Shown piece by piece: positions 36,246-62,054 of a stretch of 64,000 nt of DNA. Every line of letters begins with the position of its first letter. The stretch's first letter is position 1. A program made the position numbers and the translations under genes. The stretch is from the NCBI GenBank assembly GCA_000388065.2, contig KB932202.1. One strand, written 5' to 3'. The stretch is from Fonticula alba ATCC 38817. Its lineage: Eukaryota > Protista > Nucleariida. Below the pieces are notes generated by a model. It saw only the letters and a program-made list of their open reading frames with translations, did no database searches and was not told the origin of the DNA.

Positions 36246-37075
36246 GGTGGCGGGTCACCGAGGGCGGGGGAGAGCGCAGCGCGGAGAAGCCAGGCAGGGG
36301 GGAGGGCGAGGGGCAGGGAGGCAAGCAAGCGGAGGGGAAGAAAGGGAACACACAGGGACGAGGGGGGAGGGGGGAGGGGGGAGGGGGATGATGCGTATTG
36401 CCGAGATGTCTCGCGCGGCTCCCACCCCAGGGCGGATCCCGAGATAGGCCAGCAGATGCCCACGCACCATGAAATGCCGATGCAACGGACTATCATGTGT
36501 CCTCTACCTAAATAACTGTTACCGGGCTGCCGCTTTTCAAACTGCCTGTTCCCGCGCCGGCGGCCGGGAGCTTTTGGCTTGGGACGGGCGCGTGCGTGTG
36601 TGCCGGAAACTGGCGCCGAGAAGGGCCATCCCTCTCGGGAGGGGGGGGGGGGGGGGATGTCTGCGCGTGTGTGGGTGCGAGGGGGCTTGGGGAGGCCATA
36701 TGTCCGACCGCGATCCGCCGATCGGATCGGCAGTGTTTCCAAGCCGCCTGGTCGCCGGGCCGCCGGTTTCCAACGAGGGGAGGCCCAACGGCATGGAGGG
36801 CGCCCGAATCCCAGGGGGCGAGGGGAAGATCGCCGAGCCCCCTCGGGGGCAAGGCACGGGCGCCGGAGAACCACACTCATCGGGGTGGCCAGTGCTCCCT
36901 TGGCGGAGCGACGCGGCACCATCCCCCGTCGCCCGCCATCGGCCCCTCCCCTGCTTTTGCCTTTCTCTCCCTCGCTTTCTCTCTCTCTCTCTCCCCCCCC
37001 CCCGTGCCGTGCAGCTGCTCCCCTCCCTCGGCCCTTTCTCTTTTCCCCCTCCCCGCCCCATCAAGCGCACCTCCA
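36246..37075. promoter_or_regulatory. Probable bidirectional promoter / 5' region between CSTF2 (-) and CAP-H (+)
   Basis: Head-to-head ATGs ~830 bp apart. Inferred from gene geometry only. Confidence 0.45.
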
Positions 37076-40000: not shown

Positions 40001-40151
40001 AGTATGCCCGGACCGCCAAGCGGGTGGACATCAAGCGCTTGAAGAAGCACCTTTGGTCGGAACTGGAGGAGACCATTGCCCAGCCGGACCGGTGGTCCGA
40101 TTTGCTGGAGGGCATTCGCGCTCAGCAGGAGGCCGCCGAGGAGGCGTCCAA

Positions 40152-40183
<32 letters not shown>

Positions 40184-40659
40184 ACACCCAGGAGGATGGG
40201 TCCTCCTCGGGGGCGGAGGGGACCCCGGCCCCGCAGCCCGGGCATGAAGCCTCCCCCGGGGCCCCCATCCCGGGGGACCTCTACTATGAGCCCTCGGAGC
40301 GGACGTATCGCGCCCCTCCGGACGATGCCCTCCCCTTCAGTGCCATCATGTCGTCCCTGCGCAATGTCTACCCTCCGAAGCGCCTTTCAGAAATTTCCGC
40401 CGCCTATTGCTTCATCTGCCTGCTGCATCTGGCCAACGAGCATGGCCTCGATGTGCGGGACTCCACCGGCCTGGATGACTTGTACATTGTGGCCCCGGAG
40501 GGCACCCCGGCGGTGGTGGCTGCCGGGTCCTCCGGTGCGGGCTCCCCCCCGGCCGCTGCGTCCACCCGTCCGGCAGCCAAGGTAACCTTCCAGCTGCCGG
40601 AGGAACCCCCTGCGGCAGCCTCGGAGCTGGCCGAGCCGGTGCCCATGCAGCTCGACTGA
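37076..40659 (+). CDS. NCAPH: Condensin I kleisin subunit CAP-H (barren/Brn1/Cnd2)
   Basis: Exons 37076-37273, 37444-37770, 37964-38246, 38438-40659. WMKICTDN|KINSTNSW, NFQVASCTLDGCVKVYSTRVDS, TLSLDFSGRVVFD, IEYARTAKRVDIKRLKKHLW and ISAAYCFICLLHLANEHGL are Cnd2-family signatures. Confidence 0.95.
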
Positions 40660-41176: not shown

Positions 41177-44125
41177 CTAGCCGAGAAAGAGCCCACGGAA
41201 AGTGGCCTCGATGATGCGCGCCAGGTCAGTGGCCGCGTCGTGGCAAATGTCTGCCAGATCGCCGGTGACAGTGCCATCAGCGGTGCCGACTTCGGTGAAC
41301 AGCCGGACGATGTCCTCCGTGCCACTGGGCCGGACGAAGGCCCGCGCCACCAGCGGCAGCCCGCACCGGGTCTTGAGGCCATTGAGTCGGGCCACCTCAG
41401 CCGCCAGGGCCTGGGCCACCTCGGTCGGCTGGCACAGCACATCCTCCTGATCCGGGGAGGTGAGGAACTTCGTGCGGTCGAGCTGCATCCAAGCGGCGTC
41501 CCCGGGGGCATCGAGTGTGAGCATGTAGCAGCTTAAGGTGGTGAGTATGCTGTGCTGCGTTGCGCCGTGCGACGATGTGCGACGCTGTGCGGGGCACGTA
41601 TGGGCATGGGTGTGTGTGTGTGCGCGCGCGCAGCAGGGAAAGGACTGCCCATGACATACCTTGAGGCTCTGCAAGTGCGAGGGCCAATCCCGATAGAGGT
41701 CGATCCAGCGGCGGAGCTCGACATCCAGATCGCTGGCAAGCTCAGTCCCAGGAGGAATGCCCTGGCCGGCCGGCAGGCATGTGGCCAGCGCGCGCCATGC
41801 CTCCTGCGCCCGGAGGGCCGCCTCGACCGCATAAATCAGACCAATCCCATCGCCGGTGAACTGGTTGAACAGCCGGCTGAAAGAGAGCAGCGCCCGGGCC
41901 GCATGGTGGAGGGGGGCCTGGTCGGCCGGAGTGGCGGCCAAATCAAGCAGGGCCCGACAGGCTGCCGGCGAGAAAAGCACCGTCCCATGGCCGTTGGCCT
42001 CGAAGTAGACCCCAACATCGAAGTGCCGCTCGGCCAGCGCGTGGAGGTTCTTGACGCCGGAGTTGGCGAACAGCGTTTCCACCCCCTGAAAGGGGGGCGA
42101 AAGGCGCGAACGGCCGAGGGGCGAGGGCGGCGGCGGTGGCGGTGGCGGTGGCGGCAGCGAGAGGAAGGGATGCGCTTTGGTCAGGGTCGATGAACCACGG
42201 CCAGGCCCATCGGCAAAGGCGAGAGGTGGCGGCGAGCAGCGAGAGGTGGCGGCGAGCAGCGCGAGCCGGCGAGCGAGGGGCCGAGGCACGCACCAAGACC
42301 TCGCGCGTGTACTTGGTCGACGCGCCATTGGCATAGCGCGTTTGCACGAACCCCAGGCGCAGCGAGGCTGCCACCTCCGGGCGAAGGTGCACCACCACCG
42401 CGATCAGCGACCGCATTAGCCGGAGGAGAAGCACGGCAATGCGATCGCCATCCAGGATGTCGAATGCCCGGGTGGCTGCCAAGGGCCGAGCACGTCAGGC
42501 ACGCAGACACGAGAAGGCGAGATGGCTGCCTGGGCGAGGACGAGCGGGCAAGTGCCCTGGCGTACTGGTGCTCAAGGAGGAGTAGATCAGTCGGTCGCCA
42601 TCACCATCGAGAGAGGCAATCCGCAGGGCAGGTGGCAGGCCGGCGAAGGACCCTCGCCCGGGTGGAAGGCGCTTGGATTTGACGAAGTCCGCGCCGCACT
42701 GCGGCCCGCGGGCAGGGGCCCGAAAGAAGAGGCACCCGGGACCGGCGGACCAGGGGGCGTTCCGGTGCGACCACATGTGCGCGCGTTAGCCCTGGTGCCT
42801 GGCAAGCGTGGGGGGAGAGGGGGAGAGAGGCAGGGAGACAGAGAGAGGGAGGGAGAGGACGCACGCCGGCATTGACGACGCTGCCGCGCTGCTCGGCCGG
42901 CAGCGGATCATTGTAGATCTGGCAGAAGCCCGGCGCCAGGTGCATGCTCTCGAGGACAGTGGCCCCGACGCCGTTCGCATGGTCGACGAAGACCGGGCAG
43001 GGTGTGGGGCTCGACACCGGACGGGCGGGCCCCTCGACACCAAGATGCCGGAGCACATCGCGCGTGGCCGCCAGGAAGGCATCGAAATGCCGCTGGAACC
43101 CAGCGTAGTATGTGGCCGGGGTGAGGGTGGCCTCGCGGTCCGCGAGCGGGTCCAGGCCGTTGGCCCGGGCCACGGCCCAATGGACCGCCGGCGTGGTGAC
43201 CGACCGCATGTCGAGCAGCTCCACGCCCTTGCCCGGGGGGAGGATGCTTCGCGCCCCGGCCAGCAGGGCGGCTTTGAGCCCGGGGCAGGAGGGGCGATTG
43301 TCGACCCCGACCAGCACCCGGGCCAGGGGCTGGCCCGGGGGGGCGGCATGCGCCTGCCGGAGGCGCTCGATCGTAGCCTGGTCCACCAGCGACAGGAGGG
43401 AGTCCGCCACGGCGAGGGCATCGGCCAGACGCGCGGCCTGGCCGAGCACCGGCTCCCAGGCAGCCTCCAGCATTTGACCCTGCGTGTCAATGATCTTCAG
43501 GCCATTGTCCTGCCGATGCCGGGCGGTGTGTTTTTGGCTGTTGGCGTGAGTGGGCGTCCAGGGGCTACAGACTGGTGGCCATGAGGGAAGGCCGGAGGAG
43601 GGAGCGAGAAGGGGGGCGGGGGGTGAAGAGGGGGNNNNNNNNNNNNNNNNNNNNNNNNNNNNNNNNNNNNNNNNNNNNNNNNNNNNNNNNNNNNNNNNNN
43701 NNNNNNNNNNNGGCGGAGGCGAAAGACGGCGGCATGAATCGCCGCGACGCCTCGACCCCCGCAGCCGTGGGCATCAGGGGGGGGGGAGAAGAAAAAAAAA
43801 ACAAGAAAGCAAGAGAGGAGGGGCCTTGACCGGGGGCAAATGAGGGGCCTACCTGGGGGGGATTGTGCGAGGCGGTGATCATGACACCGACCGCGGCACC
43901 GCCGGCGGCGAACGATCGCAAGGCGGCCGCCACACCAACTTTGGTCGCAATCGACTCCAGCACCGGGTCCGCCGTGCGACGGAACCCGGCTGTGCCATAA
44001 GTGATGTTCGCCAGGAGGGCATCGGTCCACTGGATTTGGGGGCTGGTAAAGTGCGCCACCGCCGAGGCGATGGAGCCCCGCACCGGGCAAATGTCGCCCA
44101 CAGAAGGGCCAGGAGTGGTGGTCAT
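41177..44125 (-). CDS. PGM3: Phosphoacetylglucosamine mutase (AGM1/PCM1)
   Basis: Multi-exon. YGTAGFR, VMITASHNP (catalytic Ser loop), VDHANGVGA, SLDGDGDRLIY (metal loop), GFVQTRYANGAS, VYFEANGHGTVLFS and FVRPSGTEDIVRLFTE. Stop TAG at 41177-41179. Confidence 0.95.
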
Positions 44126-45323: not shown

Positions 45324-47752
45324 TCCAGGGTGAGACAAGGCAGGACGCATGGGCGGGTCTCGATGTGCCAGCGAGGAAGAGAGAGAGAGAGAGGGTGGCG
45401 AGGAAAAGGAAAAGGCCCGGCAGAAGGACACGGCAACGGTATGTGCAGGGAGGACGCACCTGTGGGAATGCCGAGAGCTGAAGGCCACAACGCGGTGGAT
45501 GACCCACAAGGGCAGGCGTGTCAATGGCAAGGCGCCCACCGCCGGGTGGCGAGGAGATGACCGACGAGCCGAGGAAGGGCACAAAGCGGCAGCCGAGAGA
45601 CGCACCCTTGTACAGGAGCCCGGTCCAGAAGTCGACATTCGGGAAGAGCTTGCGATCGCGGAAGTACACGTCATTGAGAGCCACCTCCTCCAGACGCCGG
45701 GCAATGGCCGCCAGACGGCGGACATCGGCGATGCGCTCGGCGTCGAAGGTCTGACCGGCGATGTCGGACTTGGGGCCGGCGTCGGCCAGCGCGGCCAGCG
45801 TGTCGACCACATCGCGAGCCGCCTCGGCCGCCTGCCGCGCGCGCGGATCATAGTTCTTGTACACCCGGTGGCCGAAGCCCATGAGCAGGCATTCCCGGCG
45901 CTTGACCTTCTCCAGGTACCCGGGGACCTGGTCCACGTGGCCGATCTCCTCCAGCATGCGAAGGACCGCCTCGCAGGCACCCCCATGCAGGGGCCCATAC
46001 AGGGCGGAGGCCGACCCGGCCACGGCGCTGTACGGGTCCACCGCCGACGAGGAAATGTGCCGCATGGCCGAAGTGGAGCAGTTGAGCTCATGCTCGGCGT
46101 GCAGGACAAACAGCAGGTCCAGGGCCTTGGAGAAGGCCTCCGGCGGGGGCAGGCTCCGGTCGGCACCCATGCCGAGCTGCGACCCCGAGGCCGTGCGGGG
46201 GGGGGGGGGGGGGGGGGAAGTCAAAGGGAGGGACAGCGGACAGATGTTAGAGTATGGGCCAGGGAGAAAAACCACCGGGCAATGCATACACCGGGCAGGG
46301 GCGGCCCGGCAGACGCCACCAGGCACGCACACCGGACATGGCCAGGAAGGTGGTGGCATAGTCCCAGCCCTGGGCCTGGGCGTGGCTCGAGGCGGCGGCC
46401 ACCGCGGCGAGGGCGTCGCGTGCGAGCGGCTCGTCGATGAGCTTCTGCGCCGTGAAAGAGGCCATCGCCTGGGCGGAAGACACTTCGGAGAAGGTGCGCT
46501 CCTCGGCGGGGCTCAGGCGCCCGGCCTCGGCGGCCATGGTCGCCTCGATGCTGGCCCCCTCGGCGCGGTACTTGCACCGGCGGAAGATGAGCGCCGCCAG
46601 GACCGGCGATTGGCGAAGGATCCGCTCGATCTGCCGGTCCGCCTCGGCTGGGTTGTTGCGGAAGTAGTTGTGGCCCGACGACTGCAGCATCCGAGGCCGA
46701 GGGGGGGCGGGGGGGCGGGGGGGTCAGCATGTCAGCGAGGATCCCGGCGGCGAAATGTCCCACCCGCATAGGTGGCGAGAAGTTCCGGCGGGAGGGGGCG
46801 GAGGAGAGCGAGAGAAAGGAGGCGAGAAAAAAACCGCGCCACCTACCGAGAGAGCCGGGTTCGAATCCGAGTGGAGGGCAGACATGGCACCCAGACCGCT
46901 GGGAACGAGGAAGACCGAAGGAGCGGAAGACGGACATGGCAGGCAGGCAGGCAGGCCGGAGGATGTTAGTCGTGTGATGGCGGGTGGCCCACAGCCGGGA
47001 GGCTCGATCGTTTGGCCTGGCTGCTTGGGCATCCGGGGACGTACCTGATGAACATGGACATCGGGTGGCCGGAGGTAGGCAGGGAGAAGATCAGCCGGGC
47101 CAGGGAGGCCATGTTGTCCGGCGTGGCCGCCGGGCTGAGGATCTGCTGCCACTCGCGGCGCTTTTCCGGCGTGGCGGGGGCCTGGCCGAACAGCAGCAAG
47201 TGCGCCACCTGGCACATGTCAAAGTTCTTGGCGATGTCCTCGATCGGGATGCCCCGGTACCGGAGGATGCCCTTCTCGCCATCGACGAAGGAGATGGACG
47301 ACTGGGCCACGGCAATGCTGGCCAGGGCCGGGTCGAAAATGAGCAGCCCCGGCCCGCCGCCGGCGGCAGGCTCCTCGGCCGAAGTGGCGGTCTTCTCCAC
47401 AGCCGGCGCGGGGTAGGGGCCGGGCAGGGGCCCGGGGGCGGTGATCTTCGCCAGATCCGAGGCATTGACGATGTGGCCATGGCGGATGGGAATGGTGTGC
47501 GTCTACGGGCCGGAGCGGGGGGAAGGCCCGAGCACGGCGAGCGTGACAAGTGGAGGGCAGTGTCAGGGCCATCAGGCTGGGGGGGGCGGAAAATCGGGCG
47601 AGGCCTACCTTGCCGGTGCGATTGTCCACCACGGTCAGAGTCTCTTGATAGTCCGGCGCGGCGGGGGCGGTCTGCAGGTGGTTGGCCAGCGAGTGCAGAC
47701 GCTGCTGAGCAAGGATGTCACCAGCGGCAGAGGCTCCGCCACTTTCGGTCAT
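44858..47752 (-). CDS. CS: Citrate synthase, peroxisomal/glyoxysomal (bacterial-like) type with a PTS2
   Basis: Exons 47609-47752, 47045-47502, 46847-46898, 46331-46681, 45606-46176, 45460-45477, 44858-45006, plus a possible upstream exon 48164-48204. ISFVDGEKGILRYRG, LHAEHELNCST, GPLHGGA, LMGFGHRVYKNYDPRA, PNVDF and RPRQIY are present. The N-terminus has RLHSLANHL. Confidence 0.95.
45050..45318. repeat. (AG)n microsatellite spanning an assembly gap in a citrate synthase intron
   Basis: Directly visible on both sides of the gap. Confidence 0.9.
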
Positions 47753-50700
47753 GATGGCGTAGAGTGAGCGAGGGGGGGGGGGGGAGGAGCGCAGGGCAGG
47801 TGGCCAGGCGAGAGAGAGAGAGAGAGGGAGAAAGAGGGGGGGGGAGGAGGAGGGGCAACAGCGATAAACGGGCGCGGTTGAGAGAGGGAGAGGACAGCAC
47901 GTGTGCATGCAGAAGGCTGCGATCACCGGGAGGGACAGAGAGAAGGGCAGCTTTTGTAGGCCCTCTGCCCCTCGCTCGCCGCTGCCGGGCAGCCGACCGA
48001 GTGAGGGAACTTGGCTAGCTGAGATCCCCGGGGCCTGGGCGTCTCACTGGAGCCATGGGCATGCGCGTGGGTGCGGAGGCCAGCCCAAAAGAAGCATGCA
48101 GCCATGGATCCCTGGCACACAGGCCGAGAGGCCAAAGCGAAGGGAGGGGAGGGGGGCACTTACCTCTGGAAAAATCTGGCGAAAGGCCACTCATTGGCGG
48201 ACATGGTATCTCTTTCTCTCTGCGCGTGGGCGTGTCTGAGTGTGTGTGTGTGTGTGTATCCAGTACTTTGTGGTCGGACGGAGGATTGGTCAGCGGCTCA
48301 GGCGCTGCAGAGCAGGGTCAAGAGGGGCAGCAGGAGCAGACCGGGATATCCCGGGGGGAGGGGCTGGGGGGACAGCAAGAACAACGAGGGCGAGGGCGGG
48401 GAAACAGGGACAGCCCGAGCGAATGGAGCACGGAGGGAGATCGCGTCGCGCCCAGGAGAGCGCCCCCACCCGGAGGCCGGCTAGTGATGAATCGGCCACC
48501 AGTGGATGTGGAGGTATCTAGTCACCGATGGAACAAAAACACACCCACACACAATCACACAAGCGTGCACGCACACGGCGGCCCCCCCCCCCGCCCGCCC
48601 TCGAGCAGGCGAGCCGGCCTCTGATCGATCAAGGCCCCGGCTCCCTCCCGGGACAACAGTTGGCACCCGCTGGCCGCCGCCACGAACCGGGCTCCAGTGT
48701 TGATGCCTGGCGTCAATCCGACGATGACACCGGCAGGACACCATCACACGCCTCACGGACACGCGCGCCGGGCGCCATCGACATTGTGGTCGCCAGCCGG
48801 CGGGCGGGGGGGGGAGGGGGGCACGTTCATGCGTAAGCAGCCCCGCGAAATGTGGGACCCATTTCACAAGGCGCCCCGGGAGCGCCCCGGACCCAGCTGC
48901 TTTCTCTGCGGCCCCCCGCCCCCCCCCCGCCCCGCCGGCAGGCACCTAGGGCCGGGTGTCCCCGCCGCAGTGCGAAGGATCCATGCTCGCCCACACGGGC
49001 CCTGCCCGGTCCGCGGGGCTGAGGTCCAAACTGGGCACTTCTCGCTGGCAGGCGTGCCCCCTGCCCGCCCGGCGCCACGGCCCGCCCACGCCCGCCAGCC
49101 GGGCCGACCACACTCCGGCAGCCACATCAATCGGAAGGGCACCCCCCACCCTCCCCTCCCCCGGGCGGGTTGGGGGGGGGGCGCGCGGACACCCGAAGAC
49201 ACCCAGCAGGTGGCGGAAAAAATACCCGACACGGCCTTGACGCCGCTCGCCGAGAATGCCCGCCACACCCCGGGAGCGGCGGCTCGCCGCTGGGTCCGCA
49301 GGCGCCGGCCGCAGCACCGGGGCACGGTCCCCCGGGCCCGGCATGTCCCCCGGGGAGCGGGGGGGGGGAGCGGCTCGCGGCTCGCGGCCGGGGGCCCGGG
49401 GGCCGAACGAGCAAGGGCTCTCAAAGGGAAGAAGGCCCGCCCGGCCGCATCCGTCCGCGGCCGCGCGAAAACAAACAAACCGGTACTGCAATCGTGGATT
49501 CCAGAGGGCGCCAGCATCTTCGGCGTGATTAGCGCCGCCCTGTGGCCCGGGAGGATCACGCCCCTTCGGGACCCTCTTTGGGGTCGGGCGCCGGACCCGC
49601 ACGGCCCCCGCGGCACCGGCGCACCTCATCCAGGCCCGAGGCATGTGAGCGGCGCCCGCCCCTACACACGCGCGCGGACACACACACATACACACATACA
49701 CACACACACATCCGGCCGCGCCGGGCCAGATCGCCCCCATCCACCCATGTCCGCATGTGTGCCCGGGCCGATGCCGCTGGGGAAGCGCCGAGCCTCGCCG
49801 AAGGCACGACCAGTCACGGCAAGCTCCCCCCCGGCTGGGGAGGCCTCAAGGATGACGACGATGAGGGCGGCCCGCCAGCCCAGTGGTGGTTGGGAGCANN
49901 NNNNNNNNNNNNNNNNNNNNNNNNNNNNNNNNNNNNNNNNNNNNNNNNNNNNNNNNNNNNNNNNNNNNNNNNNNNNNNNNNNNNNNNNNNNNNNNNNNNN
50001 NNNNNNNNNNNNNNNNNNNNNNNNNNNNNNNNNNNNNNNNNNNNNNNNNNNNNNNNNNNNNNNNNNNNNNNNNNNNNNNNNNNNNNNNNNNNNNNNNNNN
50101 NNNNNNNNNNNNNNNNNNNNNNNNNNNNNNNNNNNNNNNNNNNNNNNNNNNNNNNNNNNNNNNNNNNNNNNNNNNNNNNNNNNNNNNNNNNNNNNNNNNN
50201 NNNNNNNNNNNNNNNNNNNNNNNNNNNNNNNNNNNNNNNNNNNNNNNNNNNNNNNNNNNNNNNNNNNNNNNNNNNNNNNNNNNNNNNNNNNNNNNNNNNN
50301 NNNNNNNNNNNNNNNNNNNNNNNNNNNNNNNNNNNNNNNNNNNNNNNNNNNNNNNNNNNNNNNNNNNNNNNNNNNNNNNNNNNNNNNNNNNNNNNNNNNN
50401 NNNNNNNNNNNNNNNNNNNNNNNNNNNNNNNNNNNNNNNNNNNNNNNNNNNNNNNNNNNNNNNNNNNNNNNNNNNNNNNNNNNNNNNNNNNNNNNNNNNN
50501 NNNNNNNNNNNNNNNNNNNNNNNNNNNNNNNNNNNNNNNNNNNNNNNNNNNNNNNNNNNNNNNNNNNNNNNNNNNNNNNNNNNNNNNNNNNNNNNNNNNN
50601 NNNNNNNNNNNNNNNNNNNNNNNNNNNNNNNNNNNNNNNNNNNNNNNNNNNNNNNNNNNNNNNNNNNNNNNNNNNNNNNNNNNNNNNNNNNNNNNNNNNN

Positions 50701-51480
50701 NNNNNNNNNNNNNNNNNNNNNNNNNNNNNNNNNNNNNNNNNNNNNNNNGGGGGGGGGGGGGGGGCGGGGCCGGCGTCCGCTCGCCCGCGCCGAGCCTGGG
50801 CTCGTCCCCGGGGCCTGCGGTCAGCGCTGGGAGCCGCGCGCCTGGCATGCAGGGGCCCGGGCGGTCACGCAGGGCAACAACTCCCTGCTGCCCGGCGACC
50901 CGCGCATCCCCGCGCGCACGCCCTCCGCCTCGGAGCGCCCCTGTTCCTTTCCTCTGTATCCCCGCCCTTCGTGACCCCCCCCCCCCCTGTTCCCTGCTGC
51001 CCCGCACCCCAGAGCCTCGCCCCAAGGCAGCGGCGGGGGCAGTGGCAGCCGGTGGCCGGCATTTCGTCCGAAGAACCGCCCGCCGCCCGCGCCCCCGGCA
51101 GCAGGCGAGGCAGAGGGACGCGGGACGGGAGGAGCGGAGCCCCCCCGCTGGTGCCCGTGTGTAGAACGAGCGCGTCGACCGCGTATTGCCCGGCCCACAC
51201 TCACCACTGATCCCCCCCCCCCCCCTGAGCTCCGTCTGCTGGCCTCCTGGCGGGACTGTGCCCTCGGCATTTTTATTGTTATTGTTTACCCCCCGCGTGC
51301 GGCAGCGCGTTGCCTCCAGAGCGCCCTTTCTGCCACCCTCACCCCCTTCCCCCGCCCAGCCTCCCTTCATCTTCCTTCGCTGCCCCTCTCCCCCCTCCTT
51401 TCCCCCCCCCCACCCCTACCCACGCGTGTCTGGTCGCCAAGTCAGCCGCATCTCGCGCTTCCGCCTGGTGGCCCGCTCTC

Positions 51481-51517
<37 letters not shown>

Positions 51518-51618
51518 ACGCGTGTCTGGTCGCCAAGTCAGCCGCATCCCCCCCCTCCGCCTGGTGGCCCGCTCTCTCCCCCCCCCCCCCCGCCTCCAGC
51601 CTTCCCCACCTCGCCAGG

Positions 51619-54600
51619 ATGTCCTTCCACTCTGTGGCCGTCTCGGCCTTCCTGCAGTACGCGTCCCCTGCACCGGCTCGCGATCGCGCCTCTTCTCGCT
51701 GGCTCCCCTCACCCTCCATGCGCCATCCTTCCTGCCCCCCCCCCGCCGCCCAGTGACTCTGCCGGGTCCAAGGGATACACTCCCTACGGCACGCTGGACC
51801 TGAATCTGAAGCTCGGCGACAAGGGCGCCTTCATCCTGAACCTGGACAAGGCCGGCACCGTGTACACCAGTGCCCCGATCAGCCCGGACTTCTCGCTGAC
51901 CGTGCGTATGACCCGGGCACACACACACACACACCCAGAGAGAGAAAGAGAGAGAGATGCCTGCCTATGCACGCCTACAGGCCGCCACCCCGCACCGCCC
52001 CTGACATGCTCCCCCCCCCCCCCTCCCCCCCCCCCGCTCCCTTGCTGTGGGCCGCACGCCATAGCCCCTGGACGAGACGTCGGCCATGTTCACCGGCGAG
52101 CATGGTCGCTCGTGGACCGTGCGCTTCTCCTCGGTTGATGAGGCCAGCAACTTTTATCTCAAGGTCACCTATGCCCGCGCCTCGGCCGCCCAGTTCAAGG
52201 AGCTGGTCATCCAGGACTCCCTCGTCGGCACTGGTGATGTATGTTTCCGTCGGCCCGGCCGTGTGACCCTCCCTGATGCTGCTCTGCCTCTCTTCGCCCT
52301 GCTTACGCACCATTCGCTCCATTCGATCCATTCGATCCATTCGATCCACTCGACCCTGCTCCACCCCAGGACTCCCTCGGCCCGGGGTCCCGCGCGGCGG
52401 TGGCCTACAATGCCTGGTCCTTCAGCCAGAACTCCCTGAGCCCCTTCCATACCGGACTCAACAACCCCGATCAGCAGCAGACCTTCACCATCGGTCGCGG
52501 CAAGGTGTGTGCCGGCTGGGAGACCGGTGTTCGCGGCATGAAGCTCGAGGGCCGCCGCTTCATCATGGTCCCCGCCACGATGGCCACCAGCGCCCAGGGC
52601 TTCCCCACCGGCTGCCCGCTCTTCTTCCACATGAAGCTGGCTCGCGCTCGGTTCGAGGGCTCGGCCGCCTCGGCCGCCGGCACCCCGGCCAAGGATTCGC
52701 CGCGCAAGTTCAAGACCGTGCAGGAGATCCCGCTCCCCTCCCTGCCTGTGGCGCCGGCCTCCTCCTCCGAGGTGGACGAGGATGACCCCATTCAGAGCCT
52801 GGTACGCTGCTCCACACATGTGCCCTCCCCCCGGTGGGGGGCGCGGGCTCGGTTGGGGGCTCTGCTCTTTCCCCCTGCTCCCCCCTCCCCCCTCGGCAGA
52901 CCCCTTCTCTAACCATCCCTTTCGCGACGCTTGCCCAGCGCGGCCGCGATCAGAAGCAGCAGGAGGTCATCGACCGCGTCTCGAAGTTCGGCCAGAACAT
53001 GCTCAGCAGCCTGCCGGCTCCGGCGGCTGCTGCCATGAACGACGAGGTTGCCATGACCCTGAGCCAGCGCAACAGCCAGCAGCCCGCTCAGCAGCAGCAG
53101 CAGCAGCAGCAGCAGCCCGTCCAGCAGCAGCCTGTTCAGCAGCAGCCTATGCAGCAGCAGCAGCAGCAGCCCGTTCAGCAGCAGCAGCAGCAGCAGCCCA
53201 TGTACCCCATGCAGCAGTCGCAGCAGCAGCCCATGTACCCCATGCAGCAGCAGCAGCAGCAGCCCATGTACCCCATGCAGCAGGACCCGTGGACCGGTGC
53301 CCCGCAGGCCGGCCCCGGCCAGCTGGCCCTCTATCACCCATACCAGCAGGCTGGTGCTCCGGGCGCCCCCTTCCGGCCGGCCCTTCCTGCTCCCGGGCAG
53401 CACTACGGCAACCCGGGGCACTATCACGATTCGGCTGCTGCCACGGCGGCCGCTGTGGCGGCTGCCACCGTGGCCGCGTATGCTCCGGCCGCCGTTGCCC
53501 CGGCCGCCGCTGCCGCGTCTCCGGCCCCGGTCGCCAGCCCGGCTCCGGCCCCCGGCCCGGTCGCCCTGTCCGATGAGGACCGGCGCCTGCTGAGCGCCAC
53601 GCACGATGCCGCGCAGAAGGTGGCCACCCAGCAGACCACCATGGCCACCTCGGTGGCCGGGGTGGCCGAGCAGGTGTCCACCCTGCGCGAGGGCGTCGGC
53701 CGGATTGTCAACAATCCGCTCTTCGCTTCGGACGGCGGCAAGCCCGCCATGGAGGGGCTGGAGCTGCTGCGCGCCATCCAGAAGCTGGTGACCGAGAGCG
53801 ACCGCCTGCGCCGGGAGATCGACGAGCGCTCGACCACGGTGGAGCGTCTGCAGGCTCGCGTGGCCGGCCTGGTGACCGAGAAGGAGCAGCTCATCGACGA
53901 CCGGAACCAGATGCTGGACCGGCGGAATGAGTCGCTGCGCGCGACGTCCGAGCACTCGGCCGACATCCTGCTGAAGCTGCAGCAGGACAAGTCCCGCATC
54001 GAGGCCGACCTGGCTGCCGCCCAGTCGGACCTGTCCTCGGCCCAGCGCCAGGTGGCCGGGCTGACCCGCGTGGAGACCGAGCTCCGCGAGGAGACCGCCA
54101 CCCTGACCCTGGCTCTGGAGGAGGCGCGCTCCGACGCGGACACCCTGCGCACGGAGGCCGCCACGCGGGAGACCCGCGTCAAGCAGCTGACCCGCCAGCT
54201 GAAGCTCCTGAAGGCGGCCAAGGCCGAGGCCGATGAGCGGATCACCGCCCTCGAGGAGGAGGTCAGCGACCGGATCCGCGAGCTGGAAAACGTCCGTGCC
54301 CTGTCGGACGAGCGCCGGCGCAAGTCCGATGAGGAGCTTGCCCGTGCTGAGCAGGTGCGCGCCTGGCTGCCTTTTGTGCCCCTCTCGCTCTCACTCGCTG
54401 GCCCTCGGATGAGGAGCCATGGCCTCTTCCCCGGTCACTGACACATGAATCGCACGACGCTCTGGCGTGTGGGGGGGGGGGGGCGGGGCGGGTCCCGGCT
54501 CGGTTGGGCGCGCGCGGTCCGGCAATATGACAGACCTACATCGACAGCCAGAAGGCCCTGGAGAAGGACATTTCGACCCTGCGCGAGCAGCTTCGCCGCG

Positions 54601-57205
54601 AGCGTCTGTCCTCCGGCGAGGCAACCGCCACCCGCCTCCGCGAGATGGAGGAGGAGCTCGAGGCCATCTGGACCCAGAAGCTGGAGCGCGTGCAGGAAGA
54701 CCTGCGCAAGGCCCATGCCACGGCCGTGGCCAACATGGAGATTGCCCAGCGCCAGGCCCTTGAGCAGGCTCGGGCGGAGGAGCGCGAGCTGGCCGCCGCC
54801 GCGGCCGGGTCGACCACCCGCCAGCAGGAGGCCCGCACGGCTGAGCTCGAGGCCCAGCTGGCCGAGGCCCGTGCCAAGGTGGCCCAGCTGCTGGCCACGG
54901 TGGAGGAGCTTGAGAAGACCCCCGGCGCCGCCCCGGTGGGAGCCGCTGCCGGTGGGCAGTTTACCTTTGACGATATCAAGAAGATCATGAACGGCGTGGC
55001 ACGCGGTGTGCTGCCGATTCTGGCCGACCCGGAGGAGCGCGCCACCGTGACCGGCATCATTCGTGACGCCACGCTGTCGGTTCTGAACCCGGAGCCCGTG
55101 GTCGCGGAGTCTGAGGAGTCCGAGGAGGAGTCTGACGAGGAGTCTGCTGAGGAGTCCGAGCACGAGTCCGAGCACGAGTCCGAGCACGAGTCCGAGCACG
55201 AGTCCGAGCACGAGTCCGAGCACGAGTCCGAGGAGGAGGAGGAGGAGTCCGCCGATGAGGCGGCTGCCCCTGTCGCCGAGGAGACCTCCCTTGCCGCCGA
55301 GGAGTCCGACGAGTCCATCACTGAGGAGGCCGTTGCCCCGGCTGCTCCCGGCGTGCAGGAGGAGTCCGAGGATGAGGATGAGCTCCCTGCCGTTGCGGCC
55401 CCGGGCCCGGCCCAGACCGCTGCCCTTCTCTTCGACTCGGAGGACGACGAGGAGGACCTGCCGCTTCCGGAGGTGGCGACCAAGCCCCAGGCGTCGAGCC
55501 TTCTCCTCTCGGATGACGAGGATGAGGATGATGACCCCTTCCTGCCGGCCCCCGGCAAGACTGCCGCCGTGAGCCTGGGCTTCTCGGACGACGAGGAGTC
55601 TGACGTGGCGGAGGATCCTGCCCCGTCCATGGCCGCTGCGGTCGTCAGCGATGATGCCACTGGCAGCGATGACGGTGGCGAGGAGGATGAGGACGATGCC
55701 GTCTTCGCGGCGGCCGCGTCTCCCACTGCCGCCACCCCGGCCAAGGGTGGCCTCTTCGACACTGACAGCGAGGAGGACGACCTGGAGGTCGATGCTGCGC
55801 CCACTCCCGAGGTGGAGCCTCTCGAGGAGGATGCCTCGATTGACTCTGGCGCCGAGACTCCCACTCACGAGGAGGGGTCTGTCGCTCAGAAGGAGGATGA
55901 CGACGAGCCCCTCGCTGAGGAGGCCGACGATGAGCCTATCACTGAGGAGGCCGACGATGAGCCCCTCGCCGAGGAGGNNNNNNNNNNGAGCCTATCACTG
56001 AGGAGGCCGACGATGAGCCCCTCGCCGAGGAGGACGACGACGAGCCTATCACCGAGGAGGCCGAGGAGGAGTCCTTCTCCAGCCTCGCGGCCGCCGCCAC
56101 CATCGAGAGCGATGACGATGATGATGATGCTTTCTCATCGGCCGCCGCTGCCGTGACCACCAAGAGCAGCCTCTTCGACTCCGACGATGACGAGGAGGAG
56201 GAGGAGGAGGAGGAAGACCTGCCTGCTCCTGTTGCCGAGAACACGGGTGACGAGGACGTTGCGCAGGATGCCGCTGCCGCCCTGTTTGATAGCGACGACG
56301 GCAATGATGGCGTCAACGCCGATGAGGCGGAGGAGCAGCAGCCCGAGCCCGCCGAGGAGGATCCGCTGGCCGCCGGCGGCGATGCCCATTCGTCGGACGG
56401 CGCATCCAATGCCACCTCCTCGCCCTTTGACATCGTCAATGAGGACATCGCCACCAGCAGCGACGACCACCACCTGTCGAATGACACCCTGGACAAGGAG
56501 GAGGATGCCAGTGCTGACCCCTTCGGCGATGCGGTGTCCGTCACCCTGAGCGACGCCCAGGCCCTGCAGTCGGCCTCGGTTCTGTCGGTGGCCGACTCGG
56601 ATGCCGAGGAGGCCGGCGACCCGTTCGCTGCTCCGGCCGCCAGCGCGCCGGCCGCCAGCTCCCTCTTCTCTTCCGATGACGAGGAGGACACCGCCCCGGC
56701 GCCTTCCCTCTCGGCGGCCACCACCGTGGTCGAGGATGACGCGGAGGCGGCGGCGGCCCCGATCCAGCTCCCGCCGGCCATGGACCCGCTGGTCATGGAC
56801 CCCTGGAGTCAGCCCCTGCCCGAGGCCGCGACCGCTGTCGCCGCCGAGCAGGTCCCGGAGGACGAGGCAGCGGCGGAGGAGCCCACCGAGGAGCCGCCCG
56901 CGCCCGCGCCCGCGCCCGCCATCAGCAGCAAGATCGACGATGATGACGACGACATGGACTGGCTCAATGCCACCCAGCCGAAGGCCACCGGCCCCCGGGT
57001 GACCAGCCTCTTCGGCGACACCGATGACGAGGATGATGCGCCCTTCGACACGGGCGCGTCGCCGCGTGCCGGCACCGCCGCCGCTGCTCGGTCCCGGACC
57101 AGCTCCATGCTCAAGCGCCCGGGCCGCTCGGCGTCGGTCCTCAAGTCCCCGGCCGCCAACAAGCCGACCAGTCTCTTCGGCAGCGATGATGATGACATCT
57201 TCTAA
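51619..57205 (+). CDS. FKBP15: FKBP15 (WAFL/FKBP133)-like protein: WH1-like domain, FKBP domain, coiled coil, long acidic tail
   Basis: Exons 51619-51656, 51754-51901, 52065-52238, 52370-52801, 52939-54354, 54534-57205. The frame shifts across the 11-N gap at 55978-55988. GRSWTVRFSSVDEASNFYLKVTYAR resembles human QNWSIMFESEKAAVEFNKQVCIAK. FKBP fold: FTIGRGKVCAGWETGVRGMKLEGRRFIMVP. Also VIDRVSKFGQNML. A CAG just before the ATG leaves an upstream exon possible. Confidence 0.8.
55145..55235 (+). repeat. Coding 12-bp tandem repeat (GAGTCCGAGCAC, ESEH x~6) in the FKBP15 acidic tail
   Basis: Directly visible. Confidence 0.9.
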
Positions 57206-59476
57206 GGACGCGAAGAGCGAGACAAACCCCCCCCCCCCCCCCCCCTCCTGTGCGGGAGTCGGTGCCTGCTTGNNNNNNNNNNCCCCCCCCCCCCTCCTGT
57301 GCGGGAGTCGGTGCCTGCTTGACGTTCCCGCGCACACACGCGCACGCGCACACCCGCGTGTACCCACAAACACATCCCCTTTTTAGCCTTTCTTTTCCTC
57401 GCCCTTGCGAAAAACATCCCTCAAGAAATACATTCAGCCTGCTGGATCCCCTCGGCCGTGTGCCCTGAGAGGGGGGTATCCCGTCCTTCATTCGGGCAGA
57501 GGGAGGGGGGGCGGGGGCCGTGTCTTGCTCCGCAGACAGGGGGATGGCGCCTCCTCGTTGAGGCCACGCCAGGGGAGGGCGTGCGGTCCAACAGGCAGTG
57601 GGCCCCCGGCCCGCACGCACACACACGCGCGTGCGCGCGTCATGCTCAGAGGGCCGCCGAATCAGCGGAGCACGAAGCTGCGCCTCGGGAAAAAATCCAG
57701 CTGGCAAGGCCGCGCAAGCCCCGACGGAGGGAGCGACGTGTTTGGTTGGCGCCACGGGAGGGCACACCGAGGGGCCCCTCGGCCGGCGGAGGCCCATCCC
57801 CGGTCGTCCCGTGGAACACAAGACCGCGGCAGACACGCGCCCGGAGGGGGGGGCACAGCTAGCCCGACCCACGCCCCGGGCCTGGCCGGTGAATTAATCT
57901 ACAACTGGAGATGGCTGCCCGCGGTCATGCAGAATCGGCCGTTCTGTAAGTCCGGACGGCCAGCGCACATTCCAACGCCCGGCGCAGGGACGCGCGCGCC
58001 TTTCGGACTGTCTGCGCATGCCGCAACTGATCGGAGCATCGCCATCTCCCGAGCACCATAGTCTGGGAAAATAGAACAGGCCGGCGCTCGGGACACCCCG
58101 CTCGGGGGGAGCACCCGGCCGACTCTCCGCCCCCCCCCCCNNNNNNNNNNNNNNNNNNNNNNNNNNNNNNNNNNNNNNNNNNNNNNNNNNNNNNNNNNNN
58201 NNNNNNNNNNNNNNNNNNNNNNNNNNNNNNNNNNNNNNNNNNNNNNNNNNNNNNNNNNNNNNNNNNNNNNNNNNNNNNNNNNNNNNNNNNNNNNNNNNNN
58301 NNNNNNNNNNNNNNNNNNNNNNNNNNNNNNNNNNNNNNNNNNNNNNNNNNNNNNNNNNNNNNNNNNNNNNNNNNNNNNNNNNNNNNNNNNNNNNNNNNNN
58401 NNNNNNNNNNNNNNNNNNNNNNNNNNNNNNNNNNNNNNNNNNNNNNNNNNNNNNNNNNNNNNNNNNNNNNNNNNNNNNNNNNNNNNNNNNNNNNNNNNNN
58501 NNNNNNNNNNNNNNNNNNNNNNNNNNNNNNNNNNNNNNNNNNNNNNNNNNNNNNNNNNNNNNNNNNNNNNNNNNNNNNNNNNNNNNNNNNNNNNNNNNNN
58601 NNNNNNNNNNNNNNNNNNNNNNNNNNNNNNNNNNNNNNNNNNNNNNNNNNNNNNNNNNNNNNNNNNNNNNCCCCCCCCCGCCCCTGGGTCCTCGCGCTTC
58701 CCGGGCGGGTGCCCTTCTTCAGGAAGCTTATGCTCCCTCCGCCCGCACACCCGCGACCGGGCTCCCCGCTTTTTCGGGGCCGGTAAATCCGAAGTCCATT
58801 TCCTCCCCCCTCCCAGGGATGGAGACGATCTGGTGAACTACCGCTGCTCGCCCCCGCCCCGCCGGCACGGGGAGAGATGCGACCCCCCCCCCCCCCTCGC
58901 CAGGGAGGCGGCCTTTTCGCCATGCAACCTGCCAGCCCCCGAGGGTGAACCTGGCCGGACATCCCACATCCGACTCCCTCCCCCTGCTGCCCCCTGCCCC
59001 TGCCCCCTTCCTCCCCTCGTCCGATACACGCGCCCGGCTGCGCGCACGCGCGCACTCCCCAGATCCGCTCCCCCTAGCCTCCCCCGCCTGCCGTGCCCCC
59101 CCCCTCCCCCCCCCTTCCTGATCCGGGCTGCTCCGTCGGAGGGCTCCACCGAGGGCGAGGCGCGTCGTTGCCGCCGCTGCCACCACCACCGCCACTGCTC
59201 CTGCAGCCACTGCCACTACCAGAGCAGCTGCGTCAGCGGCGGCCCCACCTCCCGCCGGCTCCCTGGCCTGCTTTTCCCCTTGCGCCGCCCCCCCCCCCAG
59301 CAAGGGCCAGCAAGTGAGGCCCTGCCCGATTGTCGACCCACTCTCTGGATCTGCTACGTCCGCGGATCAACACTATGAATTTGACCCGACACTCGGGCAT
59401 CCCCATCGTATCTGTGCGCGGTGACCCCCGGCGCCCCGTCCTGCACTCTGCGTACACCATCTCGGTCTCTGGAGCT

Positions 59477-59618: not shown

Positions 59619-62054
59619 ATGGGGTCCGACCAGCTGGGACGTCGACCGCCGCCCCCGCGCCAGCCGGTCGCCAACGCCCCCATCAGCACCACCACCACCA
59701 CCACCACCACCACCACCACGGCCAACATGCTCCCGCAGCAGGTCCTCCACCCGGCCGGCGCCACGACCAGTGCCACCATCGCCACCGGGCCCGGCGCCGA
59801 CCCGAGCTCCCTGCTTACGGGGCATCACCACCACCACCACCACCATCACCATGCGCATGGGGGGGCTTGCGACCCGACGGTCGGCCAGCCAAGCTCCCTG
59901 TCGCCGTACCCCGGGGCCGGTCCATCCCACTCGGCCACCACCCTGCCGACCGTCTCCTCGTCCACCTCCTTCGCCTCGATCTCGCCCTCCTCCTCGCCAG
60001 TGACCCCATCGGCCGGCGGCGGGACCGGGCCCGGCCCCGCCGGCGCGCCAGTCTCCGCGTCCAAGTCCTGGCGGTCCAAGTTCAATCGCTTCATCCGGTT
60101 TTCCAGCGGCGGCCCCAGCCCCACATTGAGCACCACATCCAGCGAGTCATCCTCCCTGCTGTATCAGCCCTCCCCGCCGCAGGTGGTCTCCCCCTGCACC
60201 GAACGCCTGGCCACCTCCTCCCTTCCCTCGACCCCGCGGCTGACGGTCAATTCGGAAGCCGGCGGCATGGATGCCGCTGGGCCCCGGGGCCCGGGCCCCC
60301 TTGATGAAGGTGCCTCGGCCTCGCCGGCCCCCGATGCTGCGCGGATCACCCCCGACCGGGCCTCCCTACTGGCCTCTCTGGGCCCCGGGCCAGCGCGGCC
60401 TGCCGGCTCGCCTGGGGCTGATCCCCTTCGCCGGAGCTCCTCGGCTCCCGGGCCGCCGGCCTTTCTGGCTGATCCGGCCGGCGCCTCGGCCGGGGGGGCC
60501 TCGCCCCGGGTCGCCCCGGGCACCCTCATCCACAGTCGCCCCCCCTCGATGGACGATGCGGAAATCCAGCGCGCCATTTCGGAAGCACGCGACGCCGCGC
60601 GCGAGGAATATGCCAAGGCGCTGGCCGCGCGCGAACGCGCCCGCCGGCGCGAAGTCATCCTCACCGGCCTGGTGGAGCCACTCTTCCAGCCCCTTCTCGG
60701 GCCTGATGAGGATGCCTCCCGGTCGCCGGTTGGCCATGCGTCCTCCATGGCCCCGGTCGCCGCCGCCGCCGCTGCCGCCCATACCCCGGTCGCCACCGGC
60801 ACCGCCACCACGCCTGGGCCCTGGTCGCCCTTTTCCCCGGCCTCCTCGGCGACCGCCGGCGGGGGCCCCGGGGAAAATGCCTCACATCTGGCCCGGCTCC
60901 AGCGCGACGACGCGTACTGGGCCTTCCGGCAGGATCTCATCGCGCGCCTGCTGGGGAATTCGGACCTCCTGCCGGGCGACCGGACCTGGCCCGTGTGCTC
61001 GGGATTGCTTTCCATCCTCCCGGAGGAGGGCCCCTCCCCCGGGCCAATCACCGCCCAACAGGAGGGCGATGAGGGGCCGGCCGCCGCCAATGACGAGCCC
61101 CCTGCCGCCCTGGTGCCCGGCCAGCAGCCAGACTCCGCCACCACTTCGACCTCCTCGCTGACATCCACCAGCCAGGCATCGGCACCTGCGTCCCCTTCGC
61201 CGGGGATGGGCCCCGGCGGCCGGCGGTCCAGTGCGGTCCTTTCGCCCCCGACCCCCTTGCTGTCCCCCGGCGGCGGCGCCGCCGCCGCCATGCAGCAGTA
61301 TTACGTCGGCCCGCGGCGGCCCCCACCGTCGCACGACCCGTCGGCGGCCAAGTGGCTGGGCTTCCACCAGTATGACCTGGCCCGGGTGCCGGACATGACC
61401 CCGTGCGGCTTCGACACCTGGGAGTTCGTCTTCAACCCCAGCCAAACGGCCCCGGCGGTGGTGCCCCTCAGCGCCTTGCCGCCCAATTCCCAGATGTCCT
61501 TCTTCAGCAGCAGCAGCGGCAGTAGCAGCGCTGGCGCTGGCGCCGGCCCCGGGGGAGCTGCCCCCTTGCGCGCATCCTCAACCACCTCCCTCTCGTCGAT
61601 CGCCTCGCTGGCCCTGCCGACTTTGGTCCCGGCGCTGGTTGTCCCGCCCTTGGCAGCGACTCCGGCCGCCGTGGCTCAGTGCCCCGGTCGCCGTGCCTCA
61701 GCCGACCCCTGTCCATACGGTCAATTGGCCGCCGCTCCGCCCTCCGGCGGGCAGGCAAGCCCTTCACAGCAGCAACAAAAACAAAGGCACGACCAGCCAC
61801 CTCGAGCCACTCCTGCGCCTCCGGACTGGTCGGGTGTCTCGCCAGCCCCGCCCTCCGGGGGTCCCCCATCCGCCACTGCCTCCCGGTCTCCCTCCCGCGA
61901 CAACCCATCCAAGGATCCAGTTGATCCCCTTGCGATGGATTCCCCCGTGGCGGCGGCGGCGGCGGCGGCGGCGGCGTCGACCACAGCGGCTGACGCCCTC
62001 CTCGGAACGGCTGAGGCCATTGATGACCTCATTTCACAATACTCCAACTACTAA
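59619..62054 (+). CDS. Hypothetical low-complexity protein (811 aa) with Thr and His tracts; possible upstream exons
   Basis: Uninterrupted 2.4-kb ORF with the same codon and low-complexity style as neighbouring genes. It has islands of ordinary composition (DDAEIQRAISEARDAAREEY...; YWAFRQDLIARLLGNSDLLP; KWLGFHQYDLARVPDM...WEFVF) and ends in a tandem stop TAA TAG. Confidence 0.65.
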   Translation: MGSDQLGRRPPPPRQPVANAPISTTTTTTTTTTTANMLPQQVLHPAGATTSATIATGPGADPSSLLTGHHHHHHHHHHAHGGACDPTVGQPSSLSPYPGAGPSHSATTLPTVSSSTSFASISPSSSPVTPSAGGGTGPGPAGAPVSASKSWRSKFNRFIRFSSGGPSPTLSTTSSESSSLLYQPSPPQVVSPCTERLATSSLPSTPRLTVNSEAGGMDAAGPRGPGPLDEGASASPAPDAARITPDRASLLASLGPGPARPAGSPGADPLRRSSSAPGPPAFLADPAGASAGGASPRVAPGTLIHSRPPSMDDAEIQRAISEARDAAREEYAKALAARERARRREVILTGLVEPLFQPLLGPDEDASRSPVGHASSMAPVAAAAAAAHTPVATGTATTPGPWSPFSPASSATAGGGPGENASHLARLQRDDAYWAFRQDLIARLLGNSDLLPGDRTWPVCSGLLSILPEEGPSPGPITAQQEGDEGPAAANDEPPAALVPGQQPDSATTSTSSLTSTSQASAPASPSPGMGPGGRRSSAVLSPPTPLLSPGGGAAAAMQQYYVGPRRPPPSHDPSAAKWLGFHQYDLARVPDMTPCGFDTWEFVFNPSQTAPAVVPLSALPPNSQMSFFSSSSGSSSAGAGAGPGGAAPLRASSTTSLSSIASLALPTLVPALVVPPLAATPAAVAQCPGRRASADPCPYGQLAAAPPSGGQASPSQQQQKQRHDQPPRATPAPPDWSGVSPAPPSGGPPSATASRSPSRDNPSKDPVDPLAMDSPVAAAAAAAAASTTAADALLGTAEAIDDLISQYSNY

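Follow-up and report, generated by a model that had tools for sequence, protein, structure and literature searches.

FAM21 (WASHC2) carries a long, disordered and acidic tail with 21 repeats of the LF-acidic (LFa) motif, which was originally defined as L-F-[D/E]3-10-L-F (PMC3374753) and later refined to [L/I]F[ED]3-9[L/I]F (PMC11331091). Repeat 20 (IFDDDMDDIF) occupies a basic groove of the retromer protein VPS35, known as site 2, and repeat 21 binds VPS29 through an Asp-Pro-Leu element (PMC11331091). Measurable binding of FAM21 to retromer is limited to repeats 20 and 21 and the region of repeats 1-4, and is not found for repeats 5-19 (PMC11010949). FKBP15 belongs to the same surroundings. 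The human protein binds VPS35 and FAM21 (PMC4106150), its co-precipitation with VPS35 persists, although reduced, after knock-down of FAM21 or KIAA1033, and no other partner is affected as strongly by VPS35 D620N, with which the association is lost (PMC4024763). In proximity proteomics the membrane-distal end of VPS35 labels FKBP15 (PMC12311110), and a 2026 preprint places FKBP15 adjacent to the LFa region of FAM21 and has it promote the endosomal recruitment of WASH (10.64898/2026.09.08.749775). WASH and FAM21 are older than the opisthokonts and have been lost in fungi (PMC10881157, PMC6733946); for Fonticula, a literature search on WASH and FAM21 found only general statements about this loss in fungi. 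Here we describe the FKBP15 gene of the nucleariid Fonticula alba ATCC 38817, its acidic tail and the LF-acidic motifs within it, as found in a stretch of 64,000 nucleotides of contig KB932202.1 (assembly GCA_000388065.2) that is referred to below as the window.

The locus was confirmed as an expressed, six-exon orthologue of FKBP15 (WAFL) on the + strand at 51619-57205. It encodes, in this order, a putative WH1-like domain, a divergent FKBP domain, a linker rich in Gln and Pro, the FKBP15 coiled coil, a conserved helix and an acidic disordered tail that bears seven clear LF-acidic motifs and three variants. Exons were searched one by one. In Pfam, exon 4 matches FKBP_C (2.7e-8; 34.4 bits against a cut-off of 21.1) and exon 5 matches the FKBP15-like coiled-coil domain PF23649 (6.2e-14; 52.6 bits against a cut-off of 27); exon 3 alone has no Pfam match, and neither piece of the tail has one beyond a sub-threshold match to nucleoporin-FG. 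With blastp, exon 4 aligns, at the corresponding position, with the FKBP domains of FKBP15 orthologues (1e-13 to 1e-15), exon 5 to residues 504-748 of Lingula FKBP15 (3e-27), and exon 3 to residues 143-189 of Protostelium FKBP15 (5e-4). Taken in exon order, the matches fall on orthologue residues 143-189, 182-294, 504-748 and 757-936 and are thus colinear on one transcript, the partners being the FKBP15 proteins of Lingula, gecko, Protostelium, Entosiphon and Ploeotia.

An exhaustive phmmer search of representative sequences with the PF23649 region (53545-54354) returned 86 relatives, with FKBP15 orthologues as the best full-length matches and several of the relatives confirmed by Pfam. They include proteins named FK506-binding protein 15 from Lingula, Anneissia, Ptychodera, Priapulus, Tubulanus, gecko, frog and shark, and transcriptome proteins of Protostelium nocturnum, Entosiphon sulcatum and Ploeotia vitrea. 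The top match (P0001) is a metagenomic fragment of 176 residues with 39% identity (JGI/ENA), which may derive from an unsampled relative of Fonticula. The window's own protein was absent among the matches of this representative search, and these include no close relative by which the expansion of the motifs could be dated.

Splicing and expression are evident from RNA run X2, whose contigs cross the introns; runs X1 and X9 are DNA. One X2 contig joins 51754-51901, 52065-52238, 52370-52800 and 52938-53081, a second carries 53272-54351 spliced to 54531-55181, and two further contigs span 55203-55961 and 56017-57260. The final exon ends (Table 1) were set by moving ambiguous junction letters to canonical splice sites; every intron then begins with GT and ends with AG, and each exon stays open in its phase. 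RNA contigs end where tandem repeats occur: at the poly-Q stretch (53082-53271), at the ESEH repeat (55152-55232) and at a 27-nucleotide repeat within the tail. The true N-terminus of the protein is uncertain: exon 1 is predicted from the sequence, with no contig aligned to it directly, and record 9 of X2 holds 63 unplaced letters before 51754 that would fit exon 1 together with a short 5′ untranslated region.

The tail (approximately 55095-57202) is a segment of 699 residues, of which 225 are Asp or Glu, 17 are Lys or Arg and 19 are aromatic; its mean hydropathy of 0.41 lies under the Uversky boundary of 0.52, so that it is predicted to be unfolded. Motifs were read from the translations of 54645-55977 and 55988-57205, and the same criterion, [LIVM]F followed by at least four Asp or Glu in the next eight residues, was applied to the window and to all relatives, giving the seven clear motifs in the window. 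Seven of the tail's 17 Phe residues are preceded by Leu and have an acidic run after them, against 0.9 LF expected, and most of the others come after an acidic run and a Pro, Ala or Ile (DDPF, ADPF, GDPF, APF, DDDDIF). In 20,000 shuffles of the tail, LF-acidic motifs had a mean of 0.29 and a maximum of 4, with 6 observed (P<5e-5), and the LF count of 7 (shuffle mean 0.9) was reached in none; the other five frames of the tail DNA are essentially without LF-acidic motifs. The segments of DNA that encode the motifs are alike only across the motif itself (64-81% over 36 nucleotides), and for this reason the copies are taken to be old and maintained, not recent duplications.

The motifs are of unequal completeness. 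Only LFGSDDDDIF (57173) matches the full LFa consensus exactly; LFGDTDDEDDAPF (57008) is a near match, and the other five are half motifs. Among the variants, KIDDDDDDMDWLN is in register with the LF motifs through the DNA repeat family D7. The tail also holds one EEDPL, and the 27-nucleotide repeat encodes DDEPL and DDEPI, which by sequence would be leads for VPS29 binding and nothing more. Its only basic patch accounts for 8 of its 17 Lys and Arg residues and lies between the last two LF motifs, where it could act as a regulatory switch for the terminal motifs. The same segment (57050-57165) contains strings resembling phosphorylation sites of the RxRxxS and RxxS types.

That the LF strings are incidental to a low-complexity acidic filler, arising from composition or slippage and having no specific function, is highly improbable. 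The composition of the tail is certainly extreme, and it contains tandem repeats of the slippage type (the 12-nucleotide ESEH and 27-nucleotide DDEPLAEEA repeats), but the observed counts were never reached by shuffling, the coding DNA of the motifs shares only the motif and so does not consist of recent copies, and the same motif is present in orthologues separated by more than 1 billion years. An assembly artefact, in which the sequence after 55978 would belong to another gene or frame and the long tail would be chimeric, can be given as little credence. It would draw on a gap of 10 N at 55978-55987, across which the frame shifts from that of 54534 (mod 3 = 0) to that of 55988 (mod 3 = 2), and on the interval 55961-56017, which no contig crosses in DNA (X1, X9) or RNA (X2). 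This change of frame is exactly accounted for, however, by the 46 identical bases on each side of the gap and by the register of the 27-nucleotide repeat: a single frame is restored either by a true gap of 8 nucleotides, with which one repeat unit becomes complete, or by joining the two flanks into one, at the cost of 56 nucleotides, and the predicted protein has 1,625 residues in the former case and about 1,607 in the latter. The end of an RNA contig at 56000 carries a different neighbouring repeat unit, and all alternative lengths are multiples of 27 nucleotides. Also against a chimera, RNA depth is similar on the two sides (78.6 and 99.3), motif class and composition are alike on both, and the C-terminal element of the family, DDDDDD[ML]DWL, is located after the gap. 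A single reading frame across the gap thus has good support, which comes from repeat register, openness of the frame and comparable RNA depth and not from a read.

An earlier note on this DNA, made from the letters alone, had described an FKBP15 homologue with a list of LF-acidic motifs along an acidic disordered tail of about 700 residues. The gene identity holds on the Pfam and colinear exon matches, every listed motif is present in the acidic tail, and the length, charge and predicted disorder of the tail are as described. The sequence past the gap likewise lies in the same FKBP15 transcript region, as frame, repeat register, RNA depth and the family element there agree. The call for reads to fix the frame at 55978-55988 is answered in part: repeat register and identical flanks restore the frame, while no read or contig spans the gap.

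Similar arrangements were seen at other points of the assembly. A second gap of 10 N in the 3′ untranslated region (57273-57282) is flanked by 39 identical bases (57234-57272 and 57283-57321) and resembles the gap at 55978, and in the 5′ flank of the gene (51440-51600) cacgcgtgtctggtcgccaagtcagccgcatc occurs twice around long poly-C runs. The flanking duplications look like unmerged contig overlaps, and the short 10-N gaps of this assembly may generally be without hidden sequence.

Comparison of the tail with the FKBP15 family covered 42 relatives of at least 850 residues, of which 35 have at least one LF-acidic motif. The motif falls within the last 45 residues in 25 of them and within the first 35 residues in 21, and in 19 of the 42 the C-terminal end is an acidic run with DW[LFI] after it. 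Together the last 400 residues of these relatives contain 55 motifs, compared with 5.1 expected by shuffling; the count per relative has a median of 2 and a maximum of 8. Motif-bearing proteins were found in Euleptes, Mixophyes, Pristiophorus, Lingula, Anneissia, Ptychodera, Priapulus and Tubulanus, and among protists in Protostelium nocturnum, Entosiphon sulcatum and Ploeotia vitrea. Animal FKBP15 proteins, those of vertebrates included, share an N-terminal M(S)(L)F..DDDD.DFLSP.GG and a C-terminal PPLFGDDDDDDDLDWL[SGN] (in a shorter form PLFGDDDDDDDLDWL), and often have a third motif 50-80 residues upstream of the C-terminal one; in human FKBP15 the terminal motifs are MF..DDDD.DFLSP and PLFGDDDDDDDLDWLG. 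The protist proteins have more copies, with 5 in Entosiphon, 4 in P0058, 4-6 in Protostelium and 8-9 in Ploeotia. The Ploeotia copies follow the grammar [GS][GSN]LF[DE][ST][DE]DE..LPLP, which is the same as that of the window, and Ploeotia GSLFETEDEGDGELPLPV is near-identical in grammar to window motif 1 (LLFDSEDDEEDLPLPEV). An acidic C-terminal region in which an LF-acidic motif is combined with an acidic-DWL element is thus a feature of the FKBP15 family, derived here from the 42 relatives and not from a curated definition, and the window protein shares it; in copy number it stands at the top of the family-wide range, equalled only by Ploeotia. Among the papers that could be searched, none on FKBP15 with LFa, aDLF or acidic motif gave an account of such motifs in FKBP15, and the family-wide LF-acidic motif seems to be undescribed.

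These observations bear on a further suggestion of the earlier note, that FKBP15 in this organism had acquired a FAM21/WASHC2-type tail duplicating or replacing FAM21 as the link between retromer and WASH, and hence an unusual, lineage-specific wiring. In its favour, the copy number (seven motifs and three variants) exceeds that of 41 of the 42 long relatives, and the last motif fits the LFa consensus at the extreme C-terminus, like FAM21 repeats 20-21. The motif class, however, spans FKBP15 from vertebrates and invertebrates to Amoebozoa and euglenids, one euglenid having as many copies, so that it was not acquired here, and the tail is encoded in the same exon (exon 6) as conserved FKBP15 sequence. 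Nor is the tail accompanied by a FAM21 head: the N-terminal 900 residues are FKBP15 domains, and no exon has a FAM21-related Pfam match. A pattern search of all exons for the capping-protein-interaction motif found neither L.H.[TS]..RP[KR], which we take from the literature on that motif to be its consensus, nor a loose variant. On this comparison the window protein shares with FAM21 the use of a similar kind of short motif and is not its homologue; the description of a FAM21-type tail stands as far as the repeated LF-acidic motifs go, and falls short in that a single copy fits the full bipartite consensus. A direct link between FKBP15 and retromer would also not be a new wiring, because human FKBP15 associates with VPS35 partly independently of FAM21 (PMC4024763). 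The proposed rewiring is improbable and, as it was posed, fails: the tail type is normal for the FKBP15 family, and with 35 of 42 long relatives carrying the motif such tails are largely standard in its orthologues, as the earlier note had itself named as grounds for giving up the idea.

What can be retained is that LF-acidic motifs like those by which FAM21 binds retromer are conserved in FKBP15 orthologues across eukaryotes. The explanation that we lean towards, at a level only slightly above even, is that the gene is an FKBP15 orthologue with an ancestral, multi-copy LF-acidic tail that would serve for docking of the retromer type; in it, the LF-acidic motifs are an ancestral feature of FKBP15, kept in high copy here, and not an acquisition from FAM21. 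The data establish the structure and expression of the gene, its place in the family, the non-random occurrence of the motifs and their conservation across FKBP15, while the binding partner and the avidity mechanism are inferred. Each motif would be a short linear binding element in which a hydrophobic LF anchor is followed by a negative stretch, often Ser-rich and similar to CK2 sites, and which would bind weakly in basic grooves of a partner in an endosomal coat. Foremost among the candidates would be the C-terminal part of retromer VPS35, which FAM21 repeats 19 and 20 use as their site. With its many copies, the tail would gain avidity for retromer that is densely packed, and FKBP15 would gather on the endosomal retrieval domain next to the WASH complex, which it would not replace; the terminal LFGSDDDDIF would be the strongest candidate binding site. 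In the most economical reading, the motifs would be FKBP15's own means of gripping a basic groove, either of retromer or of a related coat, and retromer binding by the Fonticula tail is plausible from its sequence. The assignment of VPS35 as the partner is tentative, somewhat below even, and the general idea of a multivalent tether built of short motifs deserves more confidence than that assignment.

Several points weigh against this explanation. Binding of the motifs to retromer is a sequence-based prediction only, and just one of the seven to ten motifs is a full bipartite LFa, the rest being half motifs that consist of LF and an acidic run. The N-terminus is a prediction, and the 27-nucleotide repeat may have more or fewer units than assembled. 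An LF-acidic string is moreover weak evidence for retromer binding, because FAM21 repeats 5-19 show no measurable binding (PMC11010949).

The motifs may also be functional with a main partner other than retromer VPS35, which is possible although on the unlikely side. Candidates that share this estimate are retriever VPS35L or the CCC complex, a PH fold of the TBC1D23 type, a FERM pocket of the SNX27 type, the appendages of AP-2 or clathrin, Arp2/3 (through the acidic-Trp sequence DDDDDDMDWL), and the protein's own WH1-like domain, with autoinhibition as the result. Acidic-Trp motifs are known to bind Arp2/3, and the acidic-DW[LFI] ends of 19 of the 42 relatives resemble them; the tail has, in addition, three DPF sequences (DDPF, ADPF, GDPF) as well as APF and SPF, which would bear on the adaptor appendages. 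The LFa repeats of FAM21 are read by the SNX27 FERM domain, TBC1D23 and Commander (PMC11331091), and most of them do not bind retromer (PMC11010949). On the other side, in aDLF motifs D[LI]F is preceded by the acidic run, while in this tail the run comes after LF, the terminal DDDDIF excepted, and the human data link FKBP15 specifically to VPS35 and FAM21 (PMC4024763, PMC3374753).

A broader proposal, on present sequence comparisons a doubtful one, is that FKBP15 may be an ancient second family of multivalent LFa-type ligands which predates the split of Euglenozoa and Amorphea and binds VPS35 or a sister coat directly. If this is true, the ligands would be the N-terminal MF..DDDD.DF and C-terminal LFGDDDDDDDLDWL in animals and up to 8-10 copies in Fonticula and euglenids. 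It would also account for the human FKBP15-VPS35 association, both in its independence of FAM21 and in its sensitivity to D620N, and in motif-rich species FKBP15 could cluster retromer with an avidity like that of FAM21. The motifs offer a simple, testable molecular basis for an unexplained finding in human cells: the binding of FKBP15 to VPS35 does not depend wholly on FAM21, and no other partner is affected as strongly by the Parkinson's-linked D620N mutation (PMC4024763).

The positions of the exons, motifs and repeats are collected in Table 1.

Table 1. Exons, tail elements and neighbouring genes of the Fonticula FKBP15 locus, in window positions
Feature	Position	Strand	Description
Exon 1	51619-51656	+	Predicted; ATG at 51619, reads MSFHSVAVSAFL.., donor GT at 51657
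Exon 2	51754-51901	+	First half of the N-terminal WH1-like domain; spliced RNA contig, GT..AG
Exon 3	52065-52238	+	Second half of the N-terminal domain; spliced RNA contig
Exon 4	52370-52801	+	Divergent FKBP-type domain; Pfam FKBP_C
Exon 5	52939-54354	+	Q/P/A-rich linker, then FKBP15 coiled-coil domain; Pfam PF23649
Exon 6	54534-57205	+	End of coiled coil, acidic tail, stop at 57203-57205; RNA contigs and open frame on both sides of the gap
Conserved helical segment	54951-55085	+	In exon 6, before the acidic tail
12-nucleotide tandem repeat	55152-55232	+	(ESEH)n where the tail begins; 6.8 perfect copies; break between contigs
LF-acidic motif 1	55425-55472	+	LLFDSEDDEEDLPLPE
Variant motif	55500-55541	+	LLLSDDEDEDDDPF; LL replaces LF, ends in DPF
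Variant motif	55575-55604	+	LGFSDDEESD
LF-acidic motif 2	55749-55787	+	GLFDTDSEEDDLE
27-nucleotide tandem repeat	55891-56071	+	6.6 copies; encodes [DE]DDEP[LI][AT]EEA (9 residues); contains the N gap 55978-55987
LF-acidic motif 3	56168-56230	+	SLFDSDDDEEEEEEEEDLPAP
LF-acidic motif 4	56279-56311	+	ALFDSDDGNDG
Acidic Asp-Pro-Leu element	56354-56368	+	EEDPL; resembles the VPS29-binding DPL of FAM21 repeat 21, in resemblance only
LF-acidic motif 5	56660-56689	+	SLFSSDDEED
Third variant	56930-56968	+	KIDDDDDDMDWLN; KI replaces LF; counterpart of the animal C-terminal LFGDDDDDDDLDWL[SGN]
LF-acidic motif 6	57005-57046	+	SLFGDTDDEDDAPF; near-bipartite
Basic patch	57050-57165	+	..RSRTSSMLKRPGRSASVLKSPAANKP..; the only one of the tail
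LF-acidic motif 7	57170-57202	+	SLFGSDDDDIF at the extreme C-terminus, stop directly after
Neighbouring genes	38263-40656 (+), 41180-43473 (-), 35300-36922 (-), 59619-62051 (+)		Ordinary neighbours

The neighbours encode the C-terminal region of condensin subunit 2 (Cnd2), a split phosphoacetylglucosamine mutase and an RRM protein, and a further one is an open reading frame of 811 residues, rich in Ser, Pro and Ala, with poly-Thr and poly-His runs and no Pfam match. Within exon 5, the glutamine-rich linker between the FKBP domain and the coiled coil (53082-53271) contains the repeat QQQQPMYPMQQ, and the contigs of all runs break there. Long poly-C and poly-G runs occur in the 5′ flank (51460-51600), inside intron 5 (54460-54490) and just past the stop (57226-57250); in every run aligned they draw huge numbers of unrelated reads and false joints. 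The polyA RNA run X24, labelled "organism B", matches the locus only at poly-G and poly-C runs and so comes from a different organism and is uninformative on expression. DNA runs X9-X14 ("organism B", 2025, together with soil and sediment metagenomes) contain 40-70% of the locus in near-identical form at low depth, which suggests that Fonticula or a close strain is present in these samples. Relative to the window, X9 shows a few substitutions and a deletion of 9 nucleotides at 52318 in intron 3.

With regard to known systems, the gene places FKBP15 among the proteins retained in the closest amoeboid relatives of fungi, and it agrees with animal FKBP15 (WAFL, FKBP133) in domain order, colinear matches, the acidic C-terminal region, the LF-acidic motifs and the element DDDDDD[LM]DWL. 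The Fonticula protein is longer (about 1,610-1,625 residues, compared with about 1,100-1,400 in animals), its FKBP domain is more divergent (34 bits), and its tail of about 700 residues has seven motifs plus three variants, against the relatives' median of 2. The DWL element, which is C-terminal in animals, is internal in Fonticula, where it has lost its LF and is followed by two more motifs. The predicted N-terminus is without the animal MF..DDDD.DFLSP, and a search of all + frames across 46000-51760, a range that includes a gap of 850 N at 49899-50748, gave no N-terminal LF-acidic motif.

The protist orthologues (Ploeotia vitrea P0072, Entosiphon sulcatum P0056, Protostelium nocturnum P0067 and P0058) match Pfam FKBP15, with or without FKBP_C, and like Fonticula have multi-copy LF-acidic tails and the same local grammar, including LF-acidic-..LPLP. 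Identity to the Fonticula protein is low (21-31% in the domains), and between the motifs the protist tails are rich in Lys and Pro, whereas that of Fonticula is rich in Ala, Glu and Asp, with almost no basic residues.

Unlike FAM21, the Fonticula protein has neither the head domain nor the capping-protein-interaction motif, most of its motifs have no second [LI]F, and their density is lower, with about 10 in 700 residues against 21 in 1,100. Both nevertheless have a long, disordered and acidic tail with repeated [LI]F-acidic elements and an acidic DPL element, the Fonticula LFGSDDDDIF resembles the IFDDDMDDIF of FAM21 repeat 20, and in human cells FKBP15 and FAM21 are both linked to VPS35 (PMC3374753, PMC11331091, PMC4024763).

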